Assembly (NCBI GenBank): GCA_950097015.1
Contig: CATNEN010000029.1
Span: 7,254,001 to 7,318,000, forward strand
Reading direction: 5' to 3'
Source of the DNA: Macrostomum hystrix
Lineage: Eukaryota; Animalia; Platyhelminthes
DNA: 64,000 nucleotides
Below the pieces are notes generated by a model. That model saw only the letters and a list, made by a program, of their open reading frames with translations. It searched no databases and was not told where the DNA came from. Below are positions 47,878-57,098 of the stretch, one piece after another (position 1 is the stretch's first letter; every line of letters starts with the position of its first letter). A program made the translations under genes and the position numbers.

Positions 47878-48741
47878 GTGGGATTCAAACCACCCTTTTA
47901 TCCAGTATGTAGAAAAGTGAAGCTACCAAGCGCACTGTCTTTTGGTCTTTGTGGAAGCAGCAGAAGAAGCAGGCTGATATTTACCGCGAGCTGCTGCAAA
48001 TCTTTAGCGAGGATGCACCTTCGAAAAAAACTGTGTCAAACTAAACTGCTGACTCCTGTCCAACTGCAAGAGAGGGTCCAGATGTGCCGCCACCTACTCA
48101 ACGCCTATCAAAACGAGCCCGACTTTCTTGGCCGCCTGGTGACTGGTGATGAAACGTGGTTTCACTTCTACGAACCAGAAACGAAACGGCAGAGCAGCGT
48201 CTGGAAGGCTACTCACGAACCCCCTCCGGCCAAGGCCAAGGCGGTGCAGTCAGCAGGTAAGCGCATGGCCACCGTGTTCTGGGACAGAGAAGGCATATTG
48301 CTGATCGAGTGGCTACCTGAAGGCAGAACCATCAATGCCCAGTACTACTGTGAAATATTGGAACGGCTGCGTGAGAAGATCAAGAGTGAGCGCCGGCGAA
48401 GGATCACCAGGGGCATTGTGCTGCAGCAGGACAACGCCAGGCCGCATACCTGCAATGCAACTATGGCTGTCATCAGGAGACTAGGCTTCGAGTTGCTGCC
48501 TCACCCTGCCTATTCTCCTGACCTGGCCCCCAGTGACTACTGATTGTTCCCTAAAATGAAAGAGCCTCTTCGTGGCCATCGCTATGGAAGCCTTTCTGCA
48601 CTCAGCTCGGCCATCAGCCAGTGGGTACGAGGGACCCCCACCGAATTCTTCGCCCAGGGCATCAGCAAGCTGCCAGAGAGATGGCACAAATGTGTGCAGC
48701 TTGGGGGTGACTATGTTGAGAAGTGCAATGTTCACAATTAG
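47878..48741 (+). pseudogene. Inactive mariner (DD34D) transposase
   Basis: Motifs VTGDETW, LQQDNARPH and YSPDLAPSDY, with 34 residues between the last two Asp. A nonsense TGA at 48541 precedes LFPKMKEPLRG. An N-terminal HTH remnant (KQADIYRELLQIFSEDAPSKKTV) lies in another frame, followed by an internal deletion. No intact TIR pair was seen. Confidence 0.92.
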
Positions 48742-49772: not shown

Positions 49773-50953
49773 AAAGACGATGAATTTTCTCCGTGCGATT
49801 CTGAATTTAGCTTTTGTGTTCGACAAAAAGATCTACTGCTCAAATAAAATATAAAATCTGTATTTTGAACTGCTGTTAAAAAATTGTCGTTAATATGCTT
49901 AGCAGCATACGCAATGAGTCCTTGAGAACTACTGTAGTAGAAAGTTATATTTGGGATCAGCATCAATAGAATATGATAAATGATCTGCTGTTATTCAAAT
50001 GTGATTGAGTTTTGTACAAGGAATTCAGAAATTGTTTATATTGTTGCGCAACATATGGTAGTTGAGAAACAATTTAGGCACTGGAATAACTGGAATCAGT
50101 TAGTAGTTGAAGGCACAGATTTGTTAAAATTTGAGCCATTCGCTAACCAAAGCCTTTATGGGACACTTGCGGCTAGGCTGCAATGTTTACCGTGCAAACG
50201 CTCTTAAAAGTAAATAATAAAATGAATATATTGAGCTCATTAGAGTCCTGGCGAGTTAGAATGTAAAGCAATGCGACTGCATAAATATCAGAGAAGAGAA
50301 CCAATGACAAAAGGCGCTTCGAAACTCTGTTAACAAAAGTAGTGATTTTGTTAAAATACCGAATACTAGTAATCACATATTAACACATGTGCTGTGCATA
50401 GATTTGTCACAAACGAAAGTCGTGGAATTTAATAATAACACATTAGATATGTACATTTTTTAACGCGAAGTTAATAGTATAAGTTTAATGTTAAAAGTGA
50501 AAGTGAAGTAAAAAACAATTGGAAGTTTTATTATTCTTAACAAAAAAGTTATTTTAGTTTTACAGGCGTTTGAAAAAATAACATTAATCAATAATGTTTT
50601 ATAAAGCTTATTAGATAACAAAAACTACAAAGCATTTGTAACACAAAACTTATTTTATTAGAAATTATTGCGATTATATTTTTCGATTAGCTTTTTATCT
50701 TTTCCGTCTGTTTAGGCAGCCTATAAATTTTTGTCCCTATTAAGTGTGACAATATTCTACTTAATAACCTTGTGATGTGAGCAGCGTTTGCATAAGTGAT
50801 ACTTTGCAACAAATGTTATACTCTACTTTAATTTCATGATTTGTCTAAATGAAATAAATTTATTAAGAAAACTGGCAATACGAACTCTTGATGTCTTAGA
50901 AAACTCTGCAAGTTCTTTCGGAAAAAAAACAATGAAGCTCTCTTACTCGTAGT

Positions 50954-53900
50954 TCACAGGCGCTCCAGAGCGTCAACAAAGTCAAACAGTTCTGAGAACA
51001 TACTCAACCGGAGGCTTTTCTGCAGCACCCGATAGAAGGCCTCCGGCGCCTGCGATCGCATTCGCACTAGGAACCGCAAATGGCGACCCTCCAGTTTGTA
51101 GGCCTCCAGATGCGTTGGCAGCCTGTTGTCAAGAAGCCATTTGGCCACCTCCTCCGAGCTCCACTTAGTGTAGGCCGCCTCTGCAGCAGGCGGCTGCGGC
51201 TGCGGCGGCTTTGTCGGAGTAGTCTGAAGCGGCTGCCCCACAGACGGTGTTATTTCCTGCTCATGGGATTGCTGGCCGAGCACAGCCTGTTTGAGATATT
51301 TGAGCAGCTTTTCCAGGCTGTCCTCCTTGTTGCGGCCGAAGTTGTAGTAAAGCTTCGTCCCCATGATGAAACCCAGCCAGCCATCTGCTTTGTACTTGTT
51401 CTCCAACAGCAAAGGCACGAGAGTCTTCTGCTTGCGAACTGCGTACTCAGCTTCTGCAACACGTGCAGCAGGTACTCACAGCTCGATTTCATATTGCATT
51501 ATTTACCAGTTTGTTAAACGATATTTGGCCTTTCCAACACTAATCAGAAACCAAAACTAATCCGCCCGTAGTCCGCCCCTAAAATCAGTTCTCATCCGCC
51601 CCCAGTCCGCCCTAAAATCAGTTCTCATCCGCCCCCAGTCCGCCTTGAAATCAGAACTCATCCGCCCCCAGTCCGCCCTGAAATCAGAACTCATCCGCCC
51701 CCAGTCCGCCTTGAAATCACACTCATCCGCCCCCAGTCCGCCCTGAAATCAGAACTCATCCGCCCCAGTGACTCACCCATGCGGCAGTTGTCGCTTTCCT
51801 TGTAGCCCTTGCAGACGCACATGAGTACAACGGCGGAACCCTCCACTGCCTTAGCCATGCACTCTAACGTTGAGTCCTGCATTTTTTCGTAGTCCACCCA
51901 CACCTGTAAGAGATGGCCGTGCAAGTTGTTTACTTTAGAAATGGTTAAAGCTGACATTAAATAAGATGTCGACACGTAAACAAAGGAAAAAATCATTCAA
52001 TTGACACCTGAAATTTCTGAGCAGTCAGCTGAGGGCAAAGCCAGCGCACGAACTCAGTACTGCTGTGCTGATGATAGCTGATCATCACGTGACCAACTGG
52101 ACTGGCTGACGTAGAGCTGTCACCGAAGAGTTTGCCAACTGCGGAATTCGGCGGAGCAGACTGTGGTGGAGGTGGCGGCGGCGGCATTCTGGTCACATCG
52201 ACATCTGGTCGCATGTTGACAACGCTTGGTTTCTTCACAGAGGAGTTGGAGCACTGTGGCGGATTGCCGAGCTCATCTGTGGAATGTGTAAACTGTTTCT
52301 AAATAAAATATAATGTCCAATTTCATGCTGCACTGGGTATTTCATGCTAAACTGTAGGATTTCATATTAAACTGTAGGTTTTCATCATAAACTGGGTCAT
52401 TCCATAATAAACTGGGTCATTCCATAATAAACTGGGTCATTCCATATTAAACTGGGTCATTTCATATTAAACTGGGTCATTCCATAATAAACTGGGTCAT
52501 TTCATATTAAACTGGGTCATTCCATAATAAACTGGGTCATGACTCATTGGTTAATGCATTAAAAGAATTATATTGAGGAGTCAGAATTCTTCAGTCCATA
52601 CAAAGTCAGTATTGATTTGTCAGCAGTTAGCTGCAGCGCCTCACCAATTTCATCCGGCGCGAAGAAGCCATCGGTGGTGTAGACTTCCTCGATGTTGTAC
52701 TTGATGGCCTGCAGATCTCGGTGAGACTTCCAGAGCTGGTTGGACGCCAGTGTTCGCAGCTCCGGGCCGCAGATCTCTTTGAGGGCCGAAGCGCAGTCCA
52801 GACTAAACGACATGGACAGCAGGATCTTCAAAGCGCTGGCAATTTCGTCGCTTCTATCCGGCGGCGACTGGAGCATGGCGCTGAGGACTGGCAGGATGCC
52901 GCAGTCTATCAGCAGCGGCTTGTTGCCCTCGTTCTTTGTGAATTGGTAGGCGCCTGTGTGCAGTTTTTTTACCGTTTATAGTTCTTTATACTGCATTTTT
53001 CGTCGATGCCTAATATAAGTAGGAGAGTTTGAACCACTACAACTATTTTGGTTATATCAACGTAATTAGGTAAATATTCTGTGACTTAAGGGGATGTGCA
53101 ATGAGGGGATATGGAATGAGGGGATATAGAATGTCGGGATATGTAATGAGGGGATATGGAATGAGGGGATATGGAATGAGGGGATAAGGAATGAGGGGAT
53201 ATAGAATGTCAAGATATGGAATGAGGGGATATGGAATGAGGGGATATGGAATGAGGGGATATGGAATGAGGGGATATGGAATGAGGGGATATGGAATGAG
53301 GGGATATAGAATGAAGGGATATGGAATGAGGGGATATAGAATGTCGGGATATGGGATGAGGGGATATAGAATGTCTGGATATGTAATGAGGGGATATGGA
53401 ATGAGGGGATGAGGTGATTTTCAAAACTAGATGGAATAAGTAGGTATAAAAATAAATTAAGCGAAGTCCGCTCACACTTGGCCAGCTCAATCACGTGATA
53501 GCCATTGGAGCGGCGAGACGCGTGATTGTGGGCCAGTCGGAGATTATTCACCAGATAAGCGGCCAGCGAGTTCTCGTGAATGAGCAGCTTTGTGGCCTCC
53601 TCTTCGTTGCAGCTGAACACGAGCACAAGGAAAGCGGAGAACCTGAATCGCTCGTTGTCAGATTTGAGGAAAGGCCGCGCTGTCTCTACAAACTTGTATT
53701 CGGCCAGGTTAAAGAAGATGTCGCTGTTGCCCTTAAACAGCATGTTGTACACAAGGCTGATGGCCTGGCGCAGCCGCTTGTCAACGTAGTCTGGAAGCTG
53801 GCCGTTCAGGTGGGCATCGGCCCAGTCTCGCTGCATCTCGGCGCTGAGCCGCAGTGCCCAGTCGTTGTGCGATAGCGCCAGTGCGAATGCCTCGCTCTGG

Positions 53901-54400
53901 TCAGTGTAGTTCTGGCACAGTGTCAGCACGTAGGCCAGCAGGTTCAGCTGCTCCTTCTTTGGGGCGCCCTCCGGCCCAATGAAGTAAGTTTGCCGCTCCG
54001 AGTTGAACGCCTCGAAAGCCAGCCGGCAGAGATTGTCAAGTAGGCCGTCAGCTTGGACTATGCTAGCTACTTTCTGCTCTCGCAGCTGAACAATGTCCGG
54101 CTCGGTTAGGCGCGACGATTTTATATAATAATTCTGTGTCAGTTTGAGCACCTGATTGCGAAACTTTGCGGTGCCGGTGTCGCCCTCGTCCAGGTGTCTC
54201 TGAACTCCGCGAATCGCCTCGGCGTTGCGCTCTAGAGTGTGCCGCCTCAGCGTCTCCAAGCTTGCGCGCGGATCTGACTCCGGGTCGGTGCCGGACTCCG
54301 ACCGACTGGGCTGCTCCGGCTTCAGCAGATCCTCGGCATCCGAGTCCGATAAAATGCCATCCGTGGTGCTCTCCACTTTGATTGACTTAGAGATGTTCAT
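50954..54400 (-). CDS. ARM-repeat / TIR (TIR_2-type) / SAM-like protein, 709 aa, 5 exons: complement 53476..54400, 52645..52953, 52008..52276, 51777..51903, 50954..51453
   Basis: Phase-consistent GT-AG splicing, 2130 nt in total. TIR: HVMISY..VWVDYEKMQDSTLECMAKAVEGSAVVLMCVCKGYKESDNCRM-E-AEYA..VPLLLE..DGWLGFIMGTKLYYNF. SAM-like: KWSSEEVAKWL..LEGRHL. ARM-like: NEGNKPLLIDCGILPVLSAML. Confidence 0.88.
51560..51770. repeat. ~33-bp minisatellite in TIR-gene intron 4
   Basis: Tandem CATCCGCCCCCAGTCCGCCCTGAAATCAGAACT. Confidence 0.9.
52340..52540. repeat. 20-bp minisatellite in TIR-gene intron 2
   Basis: Tandem ACTGGGTCATTCCATAATAA. Confidence 0.88.
53095..53410. repeat. 15-bp minisatellite in TIR-gene intron 1
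   Basis: Tandem GGGGATATGGAATGA. Confidence 0.92.
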
Positions 54401-54474
54401 GTCTGCAAGTGGGATATGGGATTTGAGCGGTTAGAGATGTCGTGAGGATGTGAGATTCGAGCGGTTGAAGAGGT

Positions 54475-54870
54475 TCTGAGGATCTGGCATTTATCTTTAG
54501 ACTAATCCTGAGGATCTGGGAAGTGATCTATGGACTCAATCCTGAGGATCTGGGAGGTTATCTATGGTCTCAATCCTGAGGATCTGGCAGGTTATCTATG
54601 GTCTCGATACTGAGGATCTGGGAGGTTATCTATGGACTCAATCCTGAGGATCTGGGAGGTTATCTATGGACTCAATCCTGAGGATCTGGCAGGTTATCTA
54701 TGGACTCAATCCTGAGGATCTGGGAGGTTATCTATGGTCTCGATACTGAGGATCTGGGAGGTTATCTATGGACTCAATCCTGAGGATCTGGGAGGTTATC
54801 GGTGGTCTCAATCCTGAGGATCTGGGAGGTTATCGGTGGTCTCAATTCTGAGGATCTGGGAGGTTTAGCT
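54475..54870. repeat. 34-bp minisatellite upstream of the TIR-gene start exon
   Basis: Tandem CCTGAGGATCTGGGAGGTTATCTATGGACTCAAT. Confidence 0.92.
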
Positions 54871-55609: not shown

Positions 55610-56190
55610 GTCAGTCCCACCTGCTCACAACCAGTCAGTCCAGCCCGCCCATCACACTCACAATTTCAGTCCCGCCCGCCCACCACCCCTCTCAGTGTCA
55701 GTGCCGCTCGCCCACCACCCCTCTCAGTGTCAGTGCCGCCCGCCCACCACCCCTCACAATGCCAGTGCCGCCCGCCCACCACCCCTCTCAGTGTCAGTCC
55801 CGCCCGCCCACCACCCCTCTCAGTGTCAGTGCCGCCCGCCCACCACCCCTCACAATGCCAGTGCCGCCCGCCCACCACCCCTCTCAGTGTCAGTCCCGCC
55901 CGCCCACCACCCCTCTCAGTGTCAGTGCCGCCCGCCCACCACCCCTCACAATGCCAGTGCCGCCCGCCCACCACCCCTCTCAGTGTCAGTGCCGCCCGCC
56001 CACCACCCCTCTCAGTGTCAGTGCCGCTCGCCCACCACCCCTCTCAGTGTCAGTGCCGCCCGCCCACCACCCCTCACAATGCCAGTGCCGCCCGCCCACC
56101 ACCCCTCTCAGTGTCAGTGCCGCCCGCCCACCACCCCTCTCAGTGTCAGTGCCGCCCGCCCACCACCCCTCACAATGTCAGTCCCGCCAG
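55610..56190. repeat. 31/32-bp minisatellite just downstream of the MBLAC2 stop
   Basis: Tandem CAGTGTCAGTGCCGCCCGCCCACCACCCCTCT. Confidence 0.93.
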
Positions 56191-56210: not shown

Positions 56211-57098
56211 TCAGGCTCGCGACTTCTCTAGGCAGGCCCGCACGCAGCCGCAGCAGCAGGCGTATCGCAGGCAGGTGGCGCATCCGTCGTTAGAGTTTCT
56301 GGCCTTCAAATAAGCGCAATAGATGATCCTATTGAGGCAGCTGCACAGCTGGTAGGCTGGCCGGCTTGATCTGGCAAGGTAGGCAGAGAGCAGGTGACGC
56401 AGCTCGTTAGGCCCGAATGGATCAAAATGGCCGGGACAGACCAGGCGGACGCGGGGCGCCAGTTCTAGCAGGCGGCGACAGCTGCGCCTGTACTGGGCCA
56501 CACTGCTGCCAGGCAGGATGTCCAGAAATCTGTCGGACAAGTAGACGGTGTCTCCGCTGAACAATAGGCCGTCACGTTCGCACCAGAGTGCCAGGCTGCC
56601 AGAAGAATGGCCAGGACAGTGCAGAACCCGGATTTGGCGACCGTCGCCAAGATCAAAGACGTGACCGTCCTGCAGTCGCAGCTTGGGCTGGGCCGGCCTG
56701 ACTCGGTATGGCGGCATCGTCGGCGGCAGTTCGCCGCGCGGCACAAAGGTGACACAGGCGTACTGATCGGCAGCGGCCAGTGCGGCGGCTTCACTGGCGT
56801 GCAGGGCGGTCAGCTGGAACTGGTGCATGCCACCGGCGTGATCGAAGTGGGCGTGAGTGGCCACGGCAGTCAGCGGCCGGTCGGGCGTCTGCGGAGCTAG
56901 GCCGGTCGAGCTGAGATGGCCGGGCAGGTCCCAGAGGCCCAGGCCGGTGTCCACCAGCAGGTCGGAGTCGCGGCCGCGGATGAGCCAGATGTTGGCCCGG
57001 TTACTGGAAAGAAACCTGCGCTCTCGGATCAGAAACACCCCCGGCTGCACCTCCGAGTGGAGGAAGTCGGTCGCGTCGTCGTCATCCGCAACTTTCAT
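56211..57098 (-). CDS. MBLAC2: Metallo-beta-lactamase domain-containing protein 2 (acyl-CoA thioesterase type), intronless
   Basis: NRANIWLIRG..DTGLG, HAHFDH metal motif, PGHSSGS, LFSGD and PGHF, collinear with MBLAC2; Cys-rich tail. Confidence 0.9.
   Translation of the reverse strand: MKVADDDDATDFLHSEVQPGVFLIRERRFLSSNRANIWLIRGRDSDLLVDTGLGLWDLPGHLSSTGLAPQTPDRPLTAVATHAHFDHAGGMHQFQLTALHASEAAALAAADQYACVTFVPRGELPPTMPPYRVRPAQPKLRLQDGHVFDLGDGRQIRVLHCPGHSSGSLALWCERDGLLFSGDTVYLSDRFLDILPGSSVAQYRRSCRRLLELAPRVRLVCPGHFDPFGPNELRHLLSAYLARSSRPAYQLCSCLNRIIYCAYLKARNSNDGCATCLRYACCCGCVRACLEKSRA

Follow-up and report, generated by a model that had tools for sequence, protein, structure and literature searches.

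A transcribed ARM-TIR-SAM gene of the flatworm Macrostomum hystrix belongs to a widespread family that retains a catalytic-position glutamate

Introduction

SARM1, a drug target, is better known than any other animal TIR enzyme; TIR-1 of C. elegans is its orthologue. Beyond animals, the CRISPR-associated TIR NADase Cat1 of prokaryotes is fused to a CARF sensor, the plant protein RPS4 is an NLR, and plant TIRs have been reported to act on nucleic acids as 2',3'-cNMP synthetase/nuclease. Catalytic TIRs self-associate to build a composite active site, into whose pocket the Glu of helix alphaC protrudes. SARM1 carries its domains in the order ARM-SAM-SAM-TIR, and an allosteric NMN/NAD+ pocket in its ARM region locks the TIR. 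The flatworm protein described here combines the same three domain types as SARM1, dSarm and TIR-1, and its TIR is likewise of the TIR_2 type with a Glu in helix alphaC, but the order is ARM-TIR-SAM and there is only one SAM domain. Proteins named 'ARM-TIR' form a class in the oyster immune-gene catalogue (PMC4346834).

The gene is located in a 64-kb stretch of Macrostomum hystrix DNA, hereafter termed the window. An original prediction, made from these letters, had proposed a five-exon gene for a protein with an ARM-like region, a Pro-rich linker, a TIR domain with a Glu in the alphaC position and a C-terminal SAM-like domain. Here, we report on the gene, its transcripts and its relatives, and discuss what the protein may do.

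Results

The gene resides on the minus strand and comprises five coding exons (Table 1) that add up to 2130 nt, i.e., 709 amino acids plus the stop codon. All introns are of the GT..AG type, the reading frame is unbroken through all five exons, and the codons split by introns are TGC, GAT and GAA, the third of which encodes the Glu. The predicted five-exon splicing to 709 residues was thus recovered exactly, and the split of the Glu codon (G|AA) by intron 4 within SDNCRM-E-AEYA is present as claimed. No second copy of the gene was found within the 64-kb window.

Table 1 Features of the ARM-TIR-SAM locus (positions in the window)
Feature	Position	Strand	Content
AG acceptor for spliced-leader trans-splicing	54403..54404	-	2 nt upstream of the ATG
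Coding exon 1	53476..54400	-	ATG at 54400-54398; 308 codons plus 1 base; GT donor; disordered N-terminal stretch, then most of the armadillo-repeat solenoid
Coding exon 2	52645..52953	-	Last armadillo repeats; Pfam Arm
Coding exon 3	52008..52276	-	Pro-rich linker (PPPPPPP), then start of the TIR
TIR start within exon 3	from ~52094	-	GHVMISY, strand betaA, helix alphaA
Coding exon 4	51777..51903	-	TIR betaB, BB loop, betaC, start of alphaC
End of exon 4	G at 51777	-	...SDNCRM plus first base of the Glu codon
Coding exon 5	50954..51453	-	Begins with AA of the Glu codon (51453-51452); remainder of the TIR (to ~51287), Pro/Gln-rich linker, SAM (~51172-50957), stop (50956-50954)
AATAAA, candidate poly(A) signal	50859..50864	-	~90 nt past the stop; assigned by motif position
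MBL-fold gene, upstream	56214..57098	-	

Transcript evidence came from Logan contigs. Those from runs X3 and X4 match the window with 0 mismatches, and each of these runs yielded one contig of 2.1-2.3 kb with exactly the four joints 52953|53476, 52276|52645, 51903|52008 and 51453|51777, and the contigs from X1 and X2 contain single joints. The X4 contig covers exon 5 and the 3'UTR, reaching position 50812. At the other end, the match of the X3, X4 and X1 contigs to the window stops at 54403 and is followed by 22-23 extra letters which, when reverse complemented, are identical to the 3'-terminal portion of the 35-nt Macrostomum spliced leader (PMC8629364). RNA-seq had been proposed as the check on splicing, and a lack of transcripts that connect the ARM exons with the TIR/SAM exons as evidence against the model. 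The transcripts do connect them, and all four joints are found in contigs 100% identical to the window.

The nearest relative is an M. lignano protein, likewise 709 aa long (BOX15_Mlig009876g2, P0001), which is collinear with all five window exons and agrees with them in the residues at the junctions. Identity amounts to 67-83% in the domain exons (67% for exon 1 against residues 1-305, 71% for exon 2, 83% for exon 4), and the linker between the domains has diverged while the domain exons are conserved. Both genes are divided into five exons in the same way, down to the intron that interrupts the Glu codon. P0001 served as a proxy in full-length searches and structure modelling, whereas the window sequence was analysed exon by exon. 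A literature search on Mlig009876 returned no paper. The upstream MBL-fold gene also adjoins the M. lignano orthologue on the same strand. It was considered as a functional partner and rejected: the protein is a generic MBL hydrolase, and neither the locus of an M. lignano paralogue nor that of the Lottia member has the gene. The arrangement is therefore treated as synteny rather than as a system.

In the N-terminal part of the protein, the Pfam Arm model matches window exon 2 with 20.6 bits, which is at the cut-off. The model of the N-terminal part of P0001 is an armadillo solenoid (pTM 0.84), and its best 50 Foldseek matches are all armadillo proteins. The ARM region of SARM1 is not among these 50. 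There is thus no special likeness to it, and ARM autoinhibition is an analogy only. The region was matched in 100 of the best 150 relatives.

The TIR domain is split between two exons, and the Pfam matches follow the split: TIR_2 profile positions 1-25 fall in exon 3 and positions 28-69 in exon 4 (E=7.8e-4), in collinear order. P0001 matches TIR_2 over the full profile length with 74 bits. In the AF2 model of P0001 (pLDDT 88.7) the Glu is model residue 81, located in a helix (76-87) that follows a strand (61-68). The best Foldseek match of this TIR model is the SARM1 TIR (6o0u), and in the VIA comparison SARM1 scored Z 17.0 with an rmsd of 2.0 over 124 residues; note that scaffold TIRs score alike (Hydra TRR-2 Z 18.1, MyD88 Z 16.8). 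At the sequence level, the family TIR profile found Cat1 (7e-9, the best match among solved structures), TIR-1 (7e-7), SARM1 (1e-4) and RPS4 (1.5e-4); chains of MyD88 or TLRs were not among its matches at E<=0.01. The profile pairs the flatworm Glu with TIR-1 HK-E-L and Cat1 WD-E-L, and a single-sequence search pairs it with the catalytic Glu of RPS4, VR-E-L. The P0001 model and these alignments agree in placing the Glu at the alphaC position, as had been predicted.

This Glu is retained in 75/76 family representatives, from coral to lungfish, and sits in a motif, S-x-x-C-R-x-E-A-E-Y, that is strongly conserved across very distant phyla. Further motifs of the family TIR are GHVMISY, VWxD, KYKxSxxCRxEAEY (which includes the Glu) and PDGWLG, and the window exons contain all eight invariant columns of alignment A2 plus the Glu. 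The surroundings of the Glu differ from those in SARM1. The profile alignment to TIR-1 and the column counts show Trp replaced by Asn at Glu-4 and the BB-loop Gly by Asp, and the loop preceding the Glu is ~8 residues shorter in the flatworm protein. Asn at Glu-4 is found in the window protein and in most representatives with the C-x-x-E motif, none of which has Trp there, although Trp occupies this position in SARM1, plant TIRs, AbTir, Cat1 and TLR4 (bioRxiv 10.64898/2026.04.20.719644, Table S4). The Asp is a feature of the Macrostomum orthologue pair, where the family as well as TIR-1 and SARM1 have Gly, and in the same pair Gln replaces the family-specific AA-loop Trp.

Downstream of the TIR, Pfam SAM models match a minority of the family (14 SAM_3, 11 SAM_2, 7 SAM_1), and window exon 5 alone yields a weak SAM match, to SMS1. 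The tail profile A4, in which window exon 5 is included, matches SAM chains only (5e-9 to 8e-3), among them the polymer-forming SAMs of TEL/ETV6 and Shank and those of SARM1. The tail of the P0001 model consists of five helices (residues 168-239, pLDDT >90), and the tail was matched in 111 of the best 150 relatives. By profile comparison, the ~100-residue tail of the family is a SAM domain; the domain table of the preprint gives only a TPR-clan domain. Family profiles, orthologue models and the tail profile together bear out the reading as ARM region, Pro-rich linker, TIR and SAM.

The architecture is not unique. Among the top 150 cluster representatives, at least 79 have ARM, TIR and SAM in this order, the bearers including coral, molluscs, annelids, lancelet, tunicate, lungfish and other groups, and TIR_2 was matched in 76/76 scanned family representatives. 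The whole-protein matches of P0001 comprise P0002/P0151 (A0A1I8GCB8, 8e-80), P0003 (A0A1I8H3D3, 1.7e-65), P0005 (Lottia V4B087, 7e-61) and P0084 (Phallusia A0A6F9DHT8, 3e-39). A0A1I8H3D3, A0A1I8GCB8, V4B087 and A0A6F9DHT8 all appear as members of cluster A0A0B7AZE4_1 in the portion of Table S2 covered here, in which P0001 itself was not found (bioRxiv 10.64898/2026.04.20.719644). The protein thus belongs to the 'ARM-TIR' catalogue class, which Hurieva et al. 2026 list as TIR cluster A0A0B7AZE4_1, and shares with it the N-terminal ARM/TPR-clan solenoid, the Glu-bearing TIR and the ~100-residue tail. Within the family, the Macrostomum pair is a diverged branch that is 29-46% identical to other ARM-TIR representatives and differs in the replaced AA-loop Trp and BB-loop Gly. 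Green algae are represented by Chlamydomonas A0A2K3E7X5 with E531 (bioRxiv 10.64898/2026.04.20.719644). A 3'cADPR-producing Chlamydomonas TIR was considered as a further member and rejected, since its Glu is E264 and the two are therefore different proteins. The original prediction had described such proteins as catalogued with little functional work. The first part holds; the second has to be amended, as the family is large, old and now partly tested (2026 preprint). The window protein is a new member of a large animal and algal family that is already catalogued.

Among known TIR systems, likeness to SARM1 and TIR-1 extends from structure, where their TIR is among the best matches, to family profiles that reach the SARM1/TIR-1 TIR and the SARM1 SAM. 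Cat1 and RPS4 resemble the flatworm protein in the aligned Glu; in contrast to it, neither contains ARM or SAM, and both retain Trp at Glu-4. Oyster A0A8W8J0Z4 is similar in size and in TIR position (residues 369-497 of 639) and, by eye, in the pattern GHVMISY..VWMD..S..C.RE..YA..IPLL..GWL, but it belongs to another 40%-identity cluster (K1QUY0_1) and is not among the best 150 relatives.

Data on the activity of related TIRs are available from an E. coli LC-MS screen (bioRxiv 10.64898/2026.04.20.719644). Four isolated TIRs of cluster A0A0B7AZE4_1, from Chlamydomonas, Branchiostoma, gar and Phallusia, have a blank 'Active' column (Table S4 rows 149-152), and nothing is entered for them in the NAD+-depletion column either. 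The Phallusia protein, A0A6F9DHT8, is identical with P0084 among the relatives found here. The 'Active' column is also blank for the known enzymes RUN1, RPP1 and RPS4, the constructs were TIR-only with the SAM cut off, and the LC-MS protocol targeted three cADPR isomers. The four negatives, though correlated, are weak because the screen missed known enzymes and removed the SAM. TIRs of this subtype from more distant relatives, among them the oyster protein A0A8W8J0Z4 (639 aa), a herring and a rotifer protein, did yield cADPR in E. coli, and this depended on the Glu (same preprint, Table S4).

Discussion

We state with confidence that the locus is a transcribed, spliced-leader trans-spliced five-exon Macrostomum gene, orthologous to BOX15_Mlig009876g2, for a cytosolic-looking 709-aa protein in which an ARM solenoid is followed by a Pro-rich linker, a TIR_2-type TIR and one C-terminal SAM, and that the ARM-TIR-SAM family to which it belongs is eukaryotic and old. 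A mis-assembled model, a pseudogene or chance ORFs would hardly produce all joints and the spliced leader in transcripts from several runs without a mismatch, an intact five-exon frame, an M. lignano orthologue with matching structure and synteny, and domain exons that are conserved alongside a diverged linker; we regard any such origin as extremely improbable.

As to function, our tentative preference is for a regulated, assembly-dependent TIR enzyme, with putative NADase activity as a plausible form of it. By analogy with SARM1, the ARM region may bind a partner or ligand and keep the TIR off. Self-association of the SAM would then draw the TIR domains together, and the alphaC Glu in S-x-x-C-R-x-E-A-E-Y may cleave NAD+ or a closely related molecule, yielding products of the ADPR or cADPR type. 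This would result in signalling or in loss of NAD+, in defence or cell death. A requirement for SAM assembly, if true, would explain the negative TIR-only constructs, and the identity of the tail suggests that TIR-only assays may have used the wrong construct.

Two other explanations have to be weighed. The protein could be a non-catalytic adaptor or scaffold whose TIR is an assembly surface as in MyD88/TIRAP, with a polymerising SAM, an ARM region that binds cargo and a Glu motif kept for binding or folding. Structural scores speak for this, as those of TRR-2 and MyD88 match that of SARM1, whereas the sequence profile finds enzymatic TIRs and no MyD88/TLR chains. The Trp missing at Glu-4 and the inactivity of 4/4 screened cluster TIRs point in the scaffold direction, but known enzymes failed in the same E. 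coli screen. Likewise, a conserved TIR Glu is not always paired with reported activity (PMC7075850), yet here it persists in 75/76 representatives, and the motif around it is strongly conserved even between very distant phyla. On balance, a scaffold is a possibility to be taken seriously, if with some doubt. Alternatively, the TIR may be an enzyme with another chemistry or substrate, such as NADP+, base exchange, linear ADPR only or a 2',3'-cNMP synthetase/nuclease reaction. The Glu motif is conserved in a pocket unlike that of classical NADase TIRs, with Asn at Glu-4 and the family-specific AA-loop Trp, and chemistry outside the cADPR isomers would be missed by screens for these isomers, so that the negatives would stem from the choice of the three targets. 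The NAD+-depletion column, which is also empty for rows 149-152, argues against this explanation, and we consider it rather improbable.

Taken by itself, the locus is an ordinary instance of the family; what it adds is a gene model fully supported by transcripts and the SAM identity of the conserved tail. The broader significance lies in a widespread, sister-like architecture that combines the three types of domain known from SARM1 with a catalytic-position Glu that is almost invariant. One speculative and, in our view, somewhat unlikely interpretation is that ARM-TIR-SAM proteins are a second SARM1-like NAD+-consuming switch, which arose or was rewired apart from SARM1, was kept from cnidarians (and green algae, according to the preprint) to lungfish and gar, is active only when assembled through the SAM, and in the flatworm acts in wound, infection or cell-death decisions. 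Macrostomum is a regenerating flatworm in which RNAi, transgenesis and regeneration assays are possible. If the family does prove to be an assembly-gated NADase or signal generator, the enzymology of animal TIR domains would reach beyond SARM1 and the TLRs.

Gene structure and transcript evidence

The five-exon gene with a 709-aa product, which had been spliced by hand in the original prediction, was confirmed by a script run on the window and by transcript contigs. The summed coding exons amount to 2130 nt, i.e. 709 codons plus a stop, every intron is bounded by GT..AG, and three codons (TGC, GAT and GAA) are split across exon joints. The codon for the predicted catalytic Glu is divided, with exon 4 ending in SDNCRM plus G and exon 5 beginning with AA followed by AEYA, and the SDNCRM-E-AEYA motif is therefore real. 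When the exons were scanned individually against Pfam, exon 2 matched Arm with 20.6 bits, exactly the cut-off, while TIR_2 profile positions 1-25 and 28-69 were found in the correct order in exons 3 and 4, respectively. Exon 5 weakly matched the SAM domain of sphingomyelin synthase 1. No further copy of the gene was found within the 64-kb window.

Features of the window around the ARM-TIR-SAM gene
Feature	Position	Strand	Remarks
Coding exons 1-5 of the ARM-TIR-SAM gene	54400-53476, 52953-52645, 52276-52008, 51903-51777, 51453-50954	minus	script on window
AATAAA	50864-50859	minus	motif position
Minisatellite arrays	51547-51766, 52320-52540, 53089-53410, 54476-54865, 55634-56000		
MBL-fold gene	56214-57098	minus	single exon, 295 aa; counterpart at the M. 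lignano locus L001: 2125-3051
Transposase_1/DDE_3 ORF piece, mariner-type	47878-48540	plus	Pfam match; probable transposon remnant, located 3' of the ARM-TIR-SAM gene
Uninterrupted ORF, 726 aa	44781-46958	minus	no Pfam family over cut-off; GIPC GH1 sub-threshold only
ORF, 476 aa	35465-36892	minus	two RRM domains (RRM_1, 118 bits); ordinary RNA-binding protein gene

In a search of public sequencing runs, four runs from one organism contained a fraction of 0.60 of the words sampled; the exonic share of the stretch is 62%. Contigs from runs X1-X4, for which the library type is unrecorded, were aligned to window positions 50700-54450. X3 and X4 each provided one contig (2122 or 2297 nt) that matched the window with zero mismatches and left out exactly 51454-51776, 51904-52007, 52277-52644 and 52954-53475, all four gaps reading CT..AC on the plus strand. 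X1 and X2, which carry other organism labels, each covered one of the four joints. The contig match ends at 54403 and is followed by 22-23 further letters. Reverse-complemented, these equal the 3' end of the M. lignano spliced leader (SL; 35 nt) as printed in PMC8629364; high conservation of Macrostomum leaders between species has been reported (PMC10468722). Trans-splicing of the mRNA to the SL thus takes place at the AG in positions 54404-54403, which leaves 2 nt between acceptor and ATG. As the contigs lack introns and carry the leader, RNA is their only possible source. The 3'UTR comprises at least 142 nt.

The leader itself ends in AUG, such that the mRNA reads AUG-ACA-UGA (window 54398-54403); this creates an upstream frame of two codons, and its stop codon overlaps the true start. 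Each intron except intron 3 (104 nt), where none is present, contains a minisatellite of its own (33-bp x6.7, 20-bp x8 and 15-bp x21.5). Two further arrays (34-bp x11.5 and 32-bp x11.5) lie upstream of the SL acceptor, and all arrays differ in sequence. The 15-bp array keeps the frame open and lengthens the exon-1 ORF to 444 aa.

Orthologue in M. lignano and family distribution

In a word-index protein search, exon 1 retrieved a sole relative, the 709-aa Macrostomum lignano protein BOX15_Mlig009876g2 (P0001, 67% identity), annotated as 'hypothetical protein'. The five window exons all align collinearly with P0001, and the junction residues AK-C-AYQ, K-VWVD and CRM-E-AEY agree; identity is 67-83% in the domain exons and only about 30% in the linker. 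At the genomic locus its coding sequence is split into five blocks at the same protein positions, and in both species the upstream neighbour in the same orientation is a gene with a Lactamase_B (metallo-beta-lactamase, MBL) fold. Collinearity, matching breaks and the common upstream gene establish the two genes as orthologues and assign the window to a Macrostomum species distinct from M. lignano. P0001 served as proxy for the window protein in full-length analyses. The MBL-fold gene was also considered as a functional partner; since it resides neither beside a paralogue nor beside the Lottia member, the arrangement is read as synteny only. SL trans-splicing of the TIR gene would allow for an operon of the two. 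A long gap of ~1.8 kb separates them, and those other loci lack the pairing.

With P0001 as query, an exhaustive search yielded 3728 proteins at E<=1e-3, of which 178 reached E<=1e-30. Among the best 150 cluster representatives, the ARM part was present in 100, the TIR in all 150 and the tail in 111, and 79 had all three in that order. Named members stem from limpets, abalone, scallops, mussels, annelids, a nemertean, a hemichordate, lancelets, the tunicate Phallusia, a coral, a lungfish and a picozoan, in addition to M. lignano paralogues. In Table S2 of a recent preprint (Hurieva et al., bioRxiv 10.64898/2026.04.20.719644), A0A1I8GCB8, A0A1I8H3D3, V4B087 and A0A6F9DHT8 fall into one TIR cluster, A0A0B7AZE4_1, an identifier that occurs there 595 times; green algae, a haptophyte, a trematode, rotifers and gar are represented in it as well. 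Its rows list 'TPR' plus a TIR with GLU, and a tail annotated as SAM does not appear among the rows examined. An 'ARM-TIR' class is present in an oyster immune catalogue (PMC4346834). Given the 79 complete representatives, the wide range of phyla and these prior catalogues, the architecture is old, common and catalogued.

Domain architecture and fold

P0001 matched the entire TIR_2 profile (74 bits, residues 481-600), and Arm and SAM_1 stayed below threshold. An AlphaFold2 model of residues 1-420 (69 relatives; pLDDT 87.5, pTM 0.84) consists of about 20 helices, and its best 50 Foldseek PDB matches were all armadillo-repeat proteins; SARM1 was not among these 50. The model of residues 470-709 (76 relatives; pLDDT 88.7) shows a TIR fold, a disordered linker and five helices (model residues 168-239). 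SAM Pfam models match a minority of individual family members. A tail-only profile that included window exon 5 retrieved, among solved structures, nothing but SAM domains (liprin-beta1, 5e-9; ETV6/TEL, 5e-8; SMS1, 9e-6; SARM1 SAM, 5e-4; also Shank and neurabin). Together with TIR_2 and the armadillo model, this bears out the proposed order of ARM, linker, TIR and SAM.

Human SARM1 TIR (6o0u) was the top Foldseek match of the TIR model, and an exhaustive structure aligner gave Hydra TRR-2 (Z 18.1), SARM1 (Z 17.0, rmsd 2.0 over 124 residues) and MyD88 (Z 16.8). The predicted fold is that of a standard TIR; as enzyme and scaffold TIRs both match it, fold alone would not tell one from the other.

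The catalytic-position Glu and possible functions

In the AlphaFold2 model the Glu is residue 81 (P0001 E550), located in helix 76-87 after strand 61-68. The original prediction equated it with SARM1 E642 and proposed superposition as a check, which the Glu passes only by way of sequence alignments: the family profile places it opposite the Glu in HK-E-L of TIR-1, which corresponds to SARM1 E642, and opposite that in WD-E-L of Cat1, a CRISPR NADase, and P0001 alone pairs it with RPS4 VR-E-L. Four residues ahead of the Glu (Glu-4), a Trp is present in the active TIRs shown in Table S4 of the preprint and in the family-profile alignment. In the ARM-TIR-SAM family this position is Asn in most representatives with a C-x-x-E motif and never Trp. 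The Macrostomum pair furthermore carries Gln for the family's AA-loop Trp and Asp for the BB-loop Gly, which aligns with the TIR-1 Gly. These replacements and the missing Trp call for caution regarding catalysis.

That the TIR is purely a scaffold seems to us somewhat less likely than an NAD+-processing role. The missing Trp would fit such a role, whereas the Glu is kept in 75 of 76 family representatives and the family profile reaches, by sequence, Cat1, TIR-1, SARM1 and RPS4 but neither MyD88 nor TLR chains at E<=0.01. According to other work, the TIRs of RUN1, RPP1 and RPS4 need assembly. When 154 isolated TIR domains were screened in E. coli for cADPR isomers (bioRxiv 10.64898/2026.04.20.719644), the 'Active' column was blank for four TIRs of cluster A0A0B7AZE4_1 (Table S4 rows 149-152: Chlamydomonas A0A2K3E7X5, Branchiostoma A0A8J9W3M3, gar W5N735 and Phallusia A0A6F9DHT8), again in favour of a scaffold; RUN1, RPP1 and RPS4 were equally blank, so that constructs lacking the SAM may have scored falsely negative throughout the family. 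More distant TIRs of the same general subtype from oyster (A0A8W8J0Z4), rotifer and herring formed cADPR, and one from coelacanth depleted NAD+, all Glu-dependently (same preprint). A TIR enzyme of different chemistry seems improbable.

The original interpretation, which extended to a putative function as a SAM-oligomerised NAD+ hydrolase or cADPR-type signal generator, is supported in part. The gene belongs to a known family, and we tentatively consider that its product may be a regulated, assembly-dependent NAD+-processing enzyme.
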